A stretch of DNA of 63,580 bases, counting the filler, from Bipalium vagum (Eukaryota): NCBI GenBank assembly GCA_037834085.1. It is 3 parts of 3 records of this genome, joined end to end, with 100 filler letters (N's around TTAATTAATTAA, not from the genome) between each part and the next. Parts side by side here need not be neighbours in the genome. Positions count along the whole stretch, not along the records: positions 1 to 26,661 come from JBBMKC010135109.1; 2 more parts are not named here. One strand, written 5' to 3'. The notes beneath the pieces were generated by a model. That model had not been told where the DNA came from. It made no database searches and saw only the letters and a program-made list of their open reading frames with translations. Both the position numbers and the translations under genes were made by a program. Numbering within the stretch: the stretch's first letter is position 1; each line of letters starts with the position of its first letter. Below, piece after piece: positions 11,143 through 24,000 of the stretch.

Positions 11143-11301
11143 ATGCCCACAACGTGCGGTTTTCCCAATTGTAAATTTCGATCGCGATATCGTGGCTCCG
11201 ATGACAATAGACATTTTTACAGAGTTCCGAAAAAACCGGCAATTCTGCGAATGAGATGGTTGGAAGCCATCGGAAGAACAGAAGAGACAATTGTTAGCCA
11301 G
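11143..11301 (+). CDS. CtBP: CtBP exon 1: THAP zinc finger, N-terminal part (absent from the ORF track)
   Basis: MPTTCGFPNCKFRSRYRGSDDNRHFYRVPKKPAILRMRWLEAIGRTEETIVSQ|, nearly identical to the remembered C. elegans CTBP-1 THAP start. C-x4-C, Pro and Trp are conserved. Confidence 0.92.
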
Positions 11302-12258
11302 GTTAGAACGATTTGATAATTGTCAAGCGAAATAATTAAGTTCTTTAAAGTCGTAAAGAGTTTACTTTTTCCTTTTGAATCGATGTCTAGTGATGTTACT
11401 TCCACAAAGTCATAATATATTTGTATCCATTATTAATTAAGAACGGTTTTTTATGAATTAATGAACAGAACGGCAATTAACAATCGGCATCATTATTGTC
11501 GAATGCATGTCTGATGAAAGAGGTCTTTTTTAGCATCATATGCGTCGTGGTCTAAGTAATTTCGATCTTCAAAAGAATTAATTGTTGAAAGATAATATGG
11601 ACAATGTTAACGAAAAAAATAATCGTTTCTCTTTAAAATACATCTAGATTGTTCTTTTTGTCTAAAACTTCACTTTCTAATAAATTTAATTAATTCAGTT
11701 GAGAGTTTGCAGTGGCCATTTTGCTGGTGGAGAAAAAAAAGAAGGGGATGTACCCGTGGCCGATCCGTCAATTGATAAGCCGATCAAAGTGGATCTGCCA
11801 CCGAAATCTTTTCGTTCTTCATCAACGATTAAGCGAAACAAAAGACTTATCAAAACACTGAGCCACGGAATCTTTCCCCAAATCAAACATTTCCCATCCA
11901 ATTCAAACATGTTCCTAAACTCCAATGGTCATTTGTCAAATTATATTTCGAATTCTCCTTTGTTGATGAGTTCGAATTTTTCCAATCTATTTCACGAATT
12001 TACAAGTAACTCTATGATCAATTATATGAACTCTTTTGGATCAATTCTGAACGCATGTGCTCCATTGTTCAAAAAACCATTTGTAACTTCGTCAACTTGC
12101 AGTGGGAATCCGACTTATCAAGATGGTAAGATTCTTAATACTTATTACTATTAAAAGTAATAATTAATATTTAATATATTTTGGTACATATTATTTATTT
12201 TACACATATATATTATTAAATGTCTATTGACATGTTTCTTATTAGATGATAATATTTA

Positions 12259-21000: not shown

Positions 21001-24000
21001 CATGTCATCAGTCCCTACCATGCACATTACCAGTAATGTTTTACATGTTGTCGAAGACGTAATTGGCGGGGCTGTCATTAATGCTTCTTGTATCGACCCA
21101 GCAATAATTGAAGGTTTGAGAACGTTATTTTTTGACTGATATGATATGTATAATAATATATAGATTTGTTGGAGATTCACAGCAATAAGATTACAATAAT
21201 GCCTATTCAAAATGAGTACAGTTATACATGTTTAATGGAAATGAGAGAACAGGCTCTTTATGAAGCTCGAAGAGGTTTACTTAACGGTTCTTTACAAAGT
21301 CTTCGAAGCTGCGTAAACAAAAATGAGCTGATCCATCAAAGTTTAATGTCAGAAAATCTTTCAAGTAATCCTCAATTTGGAATTCTGAATATTCTTCATA
21401 AAAATATTATATTTGACAAATCTAAGATTCATTGATTTCCATTTCCATCAGGGACTCGACGATATTGAATTTTCGATATTACATCTGGTGCATACCTTGA
21501 ATATGTATTTATATTTTCATGTCTACATAATTTTTCAGTAATCTTTCATTAAGCTATATTTCGTTCACTGTGATACAATGCTTAACAATGCAAAGTCATT
21601 AATCTTACATAATGCTAAAATAGTGTATCTGTAATTAATTTCTCTTGAGGACACCCGACTATAATTTCAATAGACAGACTTTGGCAACTATTGCATTGGT
21701 TTTCAGTATAACTGATACGCCACTTCTAATGTAGCATAATCTTTCTTCCTATCGTTTTGGTCTGAATGTCGAGCATTGTTTACCGATTGCTGCGTTAAAT
21801 TAGCTGTGATTATTGGTTTTGCTGGTGGCATTAGCTGCAAAAGTGACAGAATCGTTACAAATCCCATTAAAGATATGATATATAATAATTATACCATCCA
21901 TTATTTCATCCAGACTTTATTATAAGTCAACAACTAGGTTAGCTGAACATGAAAAGAAAGAAAAACTGTGATGATCATCGTCGATTGTTTCTTTGCAGTT
22001 TGAATTAATAAGGTTTGAAAAATAAATTTATTTTTGTGAGAAAAAATAATTTTCTTTCTTCACATAAAGTATACTGTTTTCTGTGTTGAAAAAATAATTA
22101 ATGTGAACTTCAACACGAAAGTTAAATTATTATTACTATTATTATTATTTTTGAATTATTAAAAATTATGTACAAAATTCCCTGCAAATGTGATTGTATT
22201 ATTGATTTCAGGGACTTATCTGCCATCCTTTATACATTTATGATAGTGTTTTATATATAATCACCAAACCGAAGTCATCACTATGAAACCCTTACCACTT
22301 ATAACACTTATCTCCACACTTGTTACATTTTTAAGAAAGATTACCTCCAAGAATTTTATTATTTTTTAAATCAGACTTCATGATTGATATTATTTTTTAT
22401 ACAAACGCACGGTTGAATCAAAAATTTTCAAATATTGCGCAATCAGTTGCACAAATTAAAATTTTTATTAAATCTTTACGCATTTATACACTTTGAACTG
22501 AATCTATGCCAATTTTTATTAAATCTTACTCGGGTTAATCTGAACTTTTATGAATGATTTAAAATAAATAACAACAATTATCAAAAAAGTCAGCTCAAGA
22601 AAACTTTAGAGACGTGATTCTCCACTACATTTATGTGCAGTCCAATTTTTGAATTTGCCACCAGATTTTATTAAAAATGTTTATTATAAAATATATTATT
22701 TGTTTGGATAATACAAACTTGGTTTGAAAAAGAAAGCTTCACGAAGATGATGACGACGTCAGCAATGTCAGGCTAAGGAGCTCACGCCCAGTTCCAGTCA
22801 ATATACTAAAAATAATACGATAATAATACGATTTTATTTCATCGGAAATTTAATGACAATTTCTAACAATATTGATTCTCATATATAATGGAAAATGATG
22901 TGGTTGTTCCTGAGCGCCTGGTATGTGGTTGTACATTTTCCAATAGTGCTATGATTCCGAACAAGCTAAACGCAAATTGTTGACTAACCATGCTTCGTTA
23001 AAAGACATAAGTTACTTTCAAATATTATTATCGGCAAAATTAAAACAAGCAAACGTTTTGGAAAACAATTCACTTAGTGAACAAGGTTAGATATGTTCCT
23101 ATGAAATTGCCGAATTAATTGCGGTTAATTTAAAACTTAATAACTTGGCTGAAGAAATAATATTACCAAGTTTTTGCGAATGGTTAATTATATAAAATCA
23201 AGTCCATTAAAAGTCGCAAAGTAATTTGAGCCAAGCCATGGAAGATACGAATGCCTGGTATTGCTCTCAGATTAAACTTAAACAAAGAAGAAGAATTATT
23301 TTCGCTTTGAAATAATCGAGATTTTATCCACAAGCATTCGAAGAGTCAATCAATTCGTTTTTTATTAAACACACGCGGCTGAGCTGCTAAAATTAAAGTC
23401 TTAAAAATATTATTTCCATTTCCTACACCTCTTCGGATCTTCAGCATTAAGAAAAATAAAAATAGATTAAATTTAAATTAAGAAGACTTAATTTTCAGGG
23501 TCTTATCACTTTTACGTCCAAGTGTGAAACCAATTATAACCATGAAGTTCAAATTTCCAATTAATTTGTGGATAATCATTTGATGAATCATAATTCGTAA
23601 CTCATCCCAGCTTTGTTAAAGCAACATTCTCCTTTATTCTTTCAAATTATTTTATTTTACATTGAAAATGATTTTCATTAACTATTTTACAGAATGAAGT
23701 AGGTGTAAGTGTGAAATTGTTAGAAGTATGCCTCGAAAAAAAGAGGTTAAGAAGAGATGACTATTGAACTTCAATCAATTCATTGATTGAATGAAGAAAT
23801 GTGTGAAAATCGAACTAAGTGATGGTTTTATGTTTAGAAATTTCATATTTGAACTAATAAAAATATGTGATTTTCTTGGTTGAAGTAACTCGTTTGTTAA
23901 GCATTTATGAAAATTGTTATGTTACATATTTTCTGGTTCTAATTCAATTTTTAAATAGTTATAGATGGAGAAATATATATGAAATAAGCACCATGTAGTT

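Follow-up and report, generated by a model that had tools for sequence, protein, structure and literature searches.

A seven-exon THAP-CtBP gene with a diverged, probably non-catalytic dehydrogenase-like domain in the flatworm Bipalium vagum

CtBP provides the textbook link between nicotinamide adenine dinucleotide, NAD(H), and transcriptional repression, and the importance of its dehydrogenase chemistry is still debated. In nematodes, the sole CtBP gene is of the CTBP-1 type. Proteins combining a THAP zinc finger with a CtBP-like domain form a described group, the THAP-CtBPs, which passages of PMC9907507, PMC8816384 and PMC13228809 credit to Nicholas et al. (2008). The core of canonical CtBP is more than 70% identical between arthropods and vertebrates, and more than 70% conserved across bilaterians, and its catalytic triad of arginine, glutamate and histidine is conserved in all bilaterians but nematodes, where a single residue of it is gone; proline- and polyalanine-rich tails are typical of the CtBPs of Platyhelminthes (PMC9907507). 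That account covers canonical flatworm CtBP only, and a literature search returned no study of THAP-CtBP paralogues in flatworms, nor of pseudo-enzymes among CtBPs like the one described here. The present analysis concerns a THAP-CtBP gene in a 63,580-nucleotide stretch of DNA from Bipalium vagum (assembly GCA_037834085.1), referred to below as the window. The stretch is made of three joined parts, and the gene lies in the first of them (positions 1–26,661, from JBBMKC010135109.1).

Three-frame translation of positions 11000–21700, combined with reading of the splice junctions, yields a gene of seven exons on the + strand (11143–21435), in which a THAP zinc finger is followed by a linker and then by a CtBP-like domain. 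The coding sequence totals 1719 nt, or 572 codons followed by TGA. All introns are GT-AG with consistent phases, and the G+C content of this piece of the window is about 27%. A first-pass annotation had proposed an intact, spliceable gene at 11143–21364. The open codons, the introns and their matching phases bear this out as a gene model with the same start; position 21364, however, marks a candidate donor, and the modelled stop lies at 21435. In one polypeptide the model carries the CTBP-1-type finger and the C-terminal CtBP-like domain that mark the THAP-CtBP group. We consider it probable that this is a functional gene of the group, in which a DNA-binding THAP finger is joined to a non-catalytic CtBP-like scaffold or oligomerisation module, and which works beside canonical CtBPs.

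The finger is encoded by two exons. Exon 1 (11143–11301, +) holds the start codon and the first 53 residues of the C2CH finger (CGFPNC...), and ends at the donor CAG/GTTAGA (slashes mark splice boundaries). Exon 2 (11699–12125, +; acceptor TTCAG/TTG, phase-1 donor ATG/GTAAGA) supplies the second half (LRVCSGHF...DVPVADP...LPPK), followed by a low-complexity linker of 106 residues. Searches were run exon by exon. Together, exon 1 and the first 36 residues of exon 2 cover the full length of PDB 2JM3, which is the C. elegans CTBP-1 THAP domain, at about 83% identity over 89 residues (E 1e-29 for exon 1 and 4e-14 for the exon 2 part, 2JM3 residues 56–91). The Pfam THAP profile matches the half-domain of exon 1 at E 1.6e-4, and the C-x4-C...C-x2-H pattern of the C2CH finger is present. 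A HMMER scan with exon 1 returned 57 clusters with this type of THAP, at 73–94% identity, and those that are named come from flatworms (Macrostomum, Schistosoma, Calicophoron, Clonorchis, Echinococcus, Cichlidogyrus) and nematodes (Panagrellus, Caenorhabditis bovis, Strongyloides, Bursaphelenchus, Globodera, Meloidogyne) only. The residues YRVPKKP, LRVCSGHF and VPVADP in the present gene are of the flatworm type. Being of the same type as that of C. elegans CTBP-1, the finger most likely binds specific DNA.

The CtBP-like domain begins with exon 3 (12555–12854, +), which encodes an N-terminal segment of the substrate domain, where the PXDLS cleft of CtBP lies, and ends in KIGPN...ND where canonical CtBP has RIGSG..NID. 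Exon 4 (15389–15595, +) encodes the hinge and the start of the NAD-binding domain, with the first two glycines of the dinucleotide motif GxGxxG at its end. Exon 5 (15642–15866, +) encodes the Rossmann core, completing the motif as GIGQIG (15589–15595 and 15642–15652) and retaining the aspartate of FYD (15704–15706). Exon 4 matches CtBP1 and CtBP2 chains in the PDB at E ~1e-6 and exon 7 matches CtBP1 at E ~0.01, in an alignment running from NEYS onward. Exon 3 gives a weak match to PDB CtBP1 over 83 residues. The profile PF02826 scored 33.5 bits on exon 5 in a genome scan, above its cut-off, and 17.5 bits, below it, in an hmmscan of the open reading frame; an exon-wise scan with the 2-hydroxyacid dehydrogenase profiles PF02826 and PF00389 gave no match in the other exons. 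When the exons of this genome's own canonical CtBP were compared with the window by tblastn, covering all of it except 16706–16741, they matched exon 3 (E 0.003, 32% identity), exons 4 and 5 (1.6e-19; 37% identity for exon 4) and exon 7 (7e-5) only. Across the CtBP-like exons, identity to the canonical protein of the same genome is 32–45%.

Exon 6 (20985–21113, +) is placed by its introns. The intron before it (acceptor TTTCAG/AT) interrupts the same codon, in phase 1, as the intron before the canonical exon encoding NTARG, and the donor of exon 5, at the other end of this intron, agrees with it in codon and phase. The intron after exon 6 is no more than one codon away from its canonical counterpart. 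These anchors, together with equal length, fix the register of exon 6, and exons 6 and 7 align to canonical CtBP without a gap. On its own, exon 6 gave no significant match in phmmer, Pfam or tblastn with the canonical exons. MAFFT --addfragments scattered it, and the intron-anchored register was tested by shuffling instead: its BLOSUM62 score was reached by 127 of 100,000 shuffles. Two further sequences bear on this region. One is a sister copy, copy B, which a search of the assembly itself (440 Mb, 272,664 contigs) located over four contigs (C223242, C196571, C225096 and C202460). The other is a homologue of exons 6 and 7 on a Logan contig from another public run, L041 (SRR33002330; 1321 bp, 43% G+C; also P0190), which is nearer to copy B than to the window gene. 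In both, the junction between exons 6 and 7 stands where it does in the gene, at a 50-nt intron running from G/GTTTGA (21114) to TATATAG/AT (21163), and the exon 7 acceptor sequence is conserved. An alternative junction, with its donor at 21124 and acceptor at 21183, was rejected in favour of this phase-1 pair, since both copy B and L041 keep the pair and with it a gap relative to canonical CtBP disappears.

The intron-anchored alignment shows what has become of the catalytic positions (all on the + strand). In exon 6, NTARG reads NMSSV, with serine in place of arginine (21008–21010), and LDVVENEP reads INASCIDP, so that the ENEP or ESEP of canonical proteins becomes CIDP, with aspartate in place of glutamate (21095–21097). 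In exon 7 (21164–21435, +), MPIQNEYS stands for TPH..WYS: against the canonical TPHSAY, MPIQNE has isoleucine in place of histidine (21205–21207) and glutamate in place of the aromatic tryptophan or tyrosine (21214–21216). The histidine column falls on the isoleucine by tblastn and by MAFFT as well. Beyond MPIQNEYS, a conserved C-terminal helix continues to CVNKNEL and is followed by a short, unconserved tail and TGA. The core conservation and the arginine–glutamate–histidine triad with tryptophan that characterise canonical CtBP are absent, as is the catalytic histidine base with arginine and glutamate partners of a 2-hydroxyacid dehydrogenase, whereas the GxGxxG motif and the acid that binds the adenine ribose are present. 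Each of these motif changes had been claimed by the first-pass annotation from an alignment by eye, and each is upheld by the comparison anchored on introns. Nor does any exon restoring NTARG or TPH occur in the window, by translation or by tblastn with the canonical exons (16706–16741 excepted), and no alternative exon seen there brings back the triad.

Comparison with copy B shows that the gene is under purifying selection. Identity between the copies is 100, 75, 60, 77, 86, 56 and 70% for exons 1 to 7 in turn. In exon 1 all 53 residues are identical at 81% nucleotide identity, with 30 synonymous differences and no non-synonymous one. Synonymous sites are saturated (proportion of synonymous differences, pS, about 0.72). 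The proportion of non-synonymous differences, pN, is 0.015 in the THAP domain, 0.155 in the linker and 0.165 in the dehydrogenase-like part, giving pN/pS of 0.024, 0.19 and 0.23, respectively. A pair of canonical CtBP loci on contigs C196163 and C202717 gives a pS of 0.714, a pN of 0.019 and a pN/pS of 0.03. Given the nearly equal pS, the two pairs, canonical and THAP-CtBP, are of equal age; over the same span the dehydrogenase-like part has changed at about nine times the rate of canonical CtBP, yet is clearly constrained. The per-domain comparison of substitution rates suggested in the first-pass annotation thus finds constraint in finger, linker and dehydrogenase-like part alike, and no decay. 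It also agrees with the high conservation that had been noted for the DNA-binding finger, and the proposal of a pseudo-enzyme is a fair one, arginine, histidine and tryptophan having been replaced in a domain which is still under selection.

To judge from the three homologous sequences, the replacements are old, because copy B and L041 have them too. NMSSV is invariant in the gene, copy B and L041. The glutamate position reads Asp, Asp and Glu, the histidine position Ile, Val and Thr, and the tryptophan position Glu, Glu and Asp, in the same order. Across these three, serine is fixed, the acid at the glutamate position is kept, the tryptophan position is always acidic, and the former histidine position is free to vary.

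The gene belongs to a family within its own genome, where canonical CtBP occupies two loci and THAP-CtBP-like sequences at least five. The canonical loci, on C196163 and C202717, answer the question of whether a normal paralogue exists: both carry NTARG, ENEP and TPH, with a tail rich in proline and polyalanine. Such a tail and the flatworm-type residues of the finger both agree with a flatworm source. No THAP exon was found on either contig, including about 48 kb upstream on C196163, all five THAP matches being on other contigs. C149176 and the pair C112120 and C231433 carry diverged THAP-CtBP-like sequences, with GGGSLS for GxGxxG, tyrosine at the arginine position and leucine at the histidine position. 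C221719 holds a compact THAP-CtBP-like locus close to the database protein P0051. In copy C, the THAP and CtBP-like exons share one contig and one strand, in the same order. The CtBP-family loci all occur in pairs: C196163 with C202717, C135109 with the four contigs of copy B, and C149176 with C112120 and C231433. Synonymous divergence is alike in the canonical and THAP-CtBP pairs (pS 0.714 and 0.715). The pairing and equal divergence suggest that the whole genome was duplicated, that it is a hybrid, or that the sample contained two species.

Degenerate catalytic sites are found elsewhere in the group. Beside THAP, Pfam finds a 2-Hacid_dh domain that scores above cut-off in Macrostomum P0004 and Echinococcus P0046 and in P0051, and weakly in Clonorchis P0017 and P0020. 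Alignment shows the flatworm members to be degenerate throughout, P0051 reading VNISS, and the nematode-like P0042, which has a strong 2-Hacid_dh match beside its THAP, to keep the full triad. In a MAFFT alignment, the arginine, the histidine or both are missing from nematode THAP-CtBPs of C. bovis (P0067), Strongyloides (P0039), Bursaphelenchus (P0041), Globodera (P0048) and Panagrellus (P0036). The C. bovis protein reads NTSEPG and TPRAAW, and these nematode losses exceed the single residue stated in PMC9907507. The earlier premise that the CtBP core is extremely conserved across bilaterians therefore needs qualifying: it does not extend into the THAP-CtBP group, where several nematode members have lost the arginine or the histidine. 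The suggestion of an unprecedented class of protein is not sustained, the group having been described already and triad loss in nematodes being on record in PMC9907507. What is mildly new is a genome with both normal CtBP and several THAP-CtBP copies. The nematode gene can be read differently in this light: CTBP-1 may have come down from an old paralogue fused to THAP, and need not be a nematode invention.

A mechanism can be proposed on this basis. The THAP finger, being of the CTBP-1 type, would tether the protein to specific DNA. The CtBP-like domain, which keeps the dehydrogenase fold and the dinucleotide glycine motif, would serve as a scaffold or oligomerisation module. It would be non-catalytic, because the arginine and histidine required for hydride transfer are lost, and it may still bind a dinucleotide through the motifs on the ADP side. 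Canonical CtBPs would do the corepressor job to which PXDLS motifs recruit them, whilst the THAP-CtBP family would act as DNA-tethered regulators, either beside canonical CtBP or through it.

Several points weigh against this reading. The splice junctions are all deduced from sequence; a sequencing-run search found no RNA run matching the stretch, its matches being what is likely the source sample and, with small shares, three runs from other organisms. The homology of exon 6 depends on its position and a modest score. What is proposed for DNA binding and repression is carried over from CTBP-1 of C. elegans. Finally, the positions aligned with NT-A-R, the aspartate of LDV, the histidine and the tryptophan, which lie on the nicotinamide side in CtBP1 structures, are all changed, and NAD(H) binding itself is therefore uncertain. 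Sensing of NAD(H) by the domain, part of the first-pass proposal, is doubtful in particular, since the nicotinamide-side positions and the tryptophan switch are all altered and the ADP-side motifs alone survive. The same proposal had PXDLS recruitment replaced by the finger; PXDLS binding may have been lost, and exon 3, the region of the cleft, is about 30% identical to canonical CtBP.

A more far-reaching version of the DNA-tethered, non-catalytic reading may be entertained, although we regard it as speculative and unlikely. Fusion of THAP to CtBP would predate the split between flatworms and nematodes. Nematodes would have kept the fused gene only, while the present lineage kept canonical CtBP and expanded a set of THAP-tethered pseudo-dehydrogenases whose remodelled pocket, with invariant NMSSV and an acid for tryptophan, gained a novel ligand or partner. 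They would then form a class of their own, of DNA-binding regulators gated by a metabolite or a partner.

The alternative that fares best makes the protein a DNA-bound adaptor. The pseudo-dehydrogenase would heterodimerise with canonical CtBP through the Rossmann interface and bring the corepressor to THAP sites, in place of PXDLS recruitment. Canonical CtBP does coexist in the genome, and the best-kept exons encode the NAD-binding domain and, at the C-terminus, the helix (86% identity between copies in exon 5 and, on this count, 82% in exon 7), which form the dimer interface of CtBP. However, the tryptophan, which is linked to the NAD(H)-dependent assembly of CtBP, is replaced by an acid, and identity to canonical CtBP in exons 5 and 7 is just 36–45%. 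We judge this adaptor role unlikely. Clearly less probable is the idea that two genes have been wrongly joined, a small THAP gene made of exons 1 and 2 and, downstream of it, a degenerate CtBP-like gene or pseudogene unrelated to it. The junction of exons 2 and 3 is known from sequence alone and the linker is of low complexity, but the frame of exon 2 stays open as far as its phase-1 donor and exon 3 has no suitably placed start codon of its own. Furthermore, flatworm and nematode proteins annotated at full length show the fusion, the order recurs on a single contig in copy C, and both parts are under selection. That the gene is a decaying CtBP duplicate with exons still open is more improbable again. 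Such a pseudogene would account for the roughly ninefold faster change of the dehydrogenase-like part and for a transposon remnant in intron 5, but not for 572 stop-free codons in DNA with 27% G+C, in which it is rare for a frame to stay open beyond 60 codons, nor for the pN/pS of 0.23 at saturated pS, the splice sites conserved in three homologues and the invariant NMSSV. Least credible of all is an enzyme still working through other residues or on another substrate, for which GxGxxG, the FYD aspartate and an acid at the glutamate position have been kept, but in which the arginine is serine in three homologues and the histidine base is Ile, Val or Thr, unable to shuttle a proton and unconserved. 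The reading of a DNA-tethered protein with a non-catalytic scaffold is the one that we carry forward.

The 3' end of the gene offers a second possible ending. At 21365 lies a candidate alternative donor, CAA/GTAATC, which copy B has at the same distance and phase. Some 330–530 nt past the stop, a block of about 200 nt (21760–21960) is 80% identical at the nucleotide level to copy B (C202460:2806–3011, minus strand); it is better conserved than most coding exons and occurs genome-wide in these two copies only. All three indels are multiples of three and the frame fits a phase-1 junction. A hypothetical last exon reached through the donor at 21365 would run from 21774 to 21925 (+), with 49 in-frame codons and a stop; the candidate has no Pfam match. 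The block could be an alternative last exon or an element of the 3' untranslated region. A structured RNA was considered and rejected (fold z-score +1.45, no Rfam family), and so was a repeat, with just two genomic copies.

Other features of the window and genome may be noted briefly. Intron 5 contains, at about 19350–20254 (+), fragments of a frame-shifted open reading frame resembling a mariner-like transposase by eye, including HDNAPPH (19952–20062) and a C-terminal ...CIESHGTFFE; these transposon-like frames gave no Pfam match at E 0.01. Intron 2 holds a long (AAT)n microsatellite (12268–12330), and the paralogous contigs contain AT-rich runs of triplets like it. Some 3 kb upstream of the gene, an open reading frame of 128 residues (7758–8144, +) resembles part of a protein from a mobile element, although Pfam gave no match to it. 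Elsewhere in the genome, C197494 carries an intronless frame (811–2367, minus strand) for a D-3-phosphoglycerate dehydrogenase of 518 residues, whose best database relatives are 56–57% identical; named animals reach at most 57%, over part of the query, so that the organism has no close relative among those annotated.

Comparison with known systems places the gene most closely beside C. elegans CTBP-1 (isoform a), the founder of the THAP-CtBP group, which has the same order of N-terminal THAP of the same type (83% over 89 residues), linker and CtBP-like domain, and whose relatives in other nematodes likewise have the arginine, the histidine or both missing. In its core, the nematode protein shares about 60% identity with CtBPs of other invertebrates (PMC9907507), whereas the present gene is 32–45% identical to the canonical CtBP of its own genome. 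Here, unlike in CTBP-1, the arginine, histidine and tryptophan are all gone, and the genome has canonical CtBP and additional THAP-CtBP-like copies alongside the gene. The flatworm THAP proteins (Echinococcus CDS15753.1 and KAH9287220.1, which the database calls 'C-terminal-binding protein 1', Clonorchis KAG5450301.1, Macrostomum A0A1I8IUV3, and P0051) are 85–94% identical in the finger and share its flatworm-type residues, a weak 2-Hacid_dh match and changed arginine and histidine positions. They differ in that none is nearer than 45–53% to the dehydrogenase exons of the gene, and in their lengths (444–1063 residues). They stand in the databases as uncharacterised proteins, and the practical value of the present finding is modest. 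The canonical CtBP1 and CtBP2 of human, rat and Drosophila, together with the canonical proteins of this genome, share the fold family, GxGxxG, the FYD aspartate and the CVNK motif with the gene, and the canonical CtBP of this genome has two intron positions in common with it or within one codon; by contrast, they have no THAP, keep the triad and tryptophan intact, and are recruited through PXDLS motifs. Arabidopsis ANGUSTIFOLIA is a CtBP homologue which is also without the catalytic residues, at about 30% core identity (PMC9907507), but it is a plant protein with cytoplasmic functions and no THAP, in which the loss is of independent origin. With canonical CtBP and a selected, apparently catalytically dead THAP family side by side, the Bipalium genome provides a natural split between a scaffold and DNA tether on the one hand and an enzyme-like corepressor on the other.

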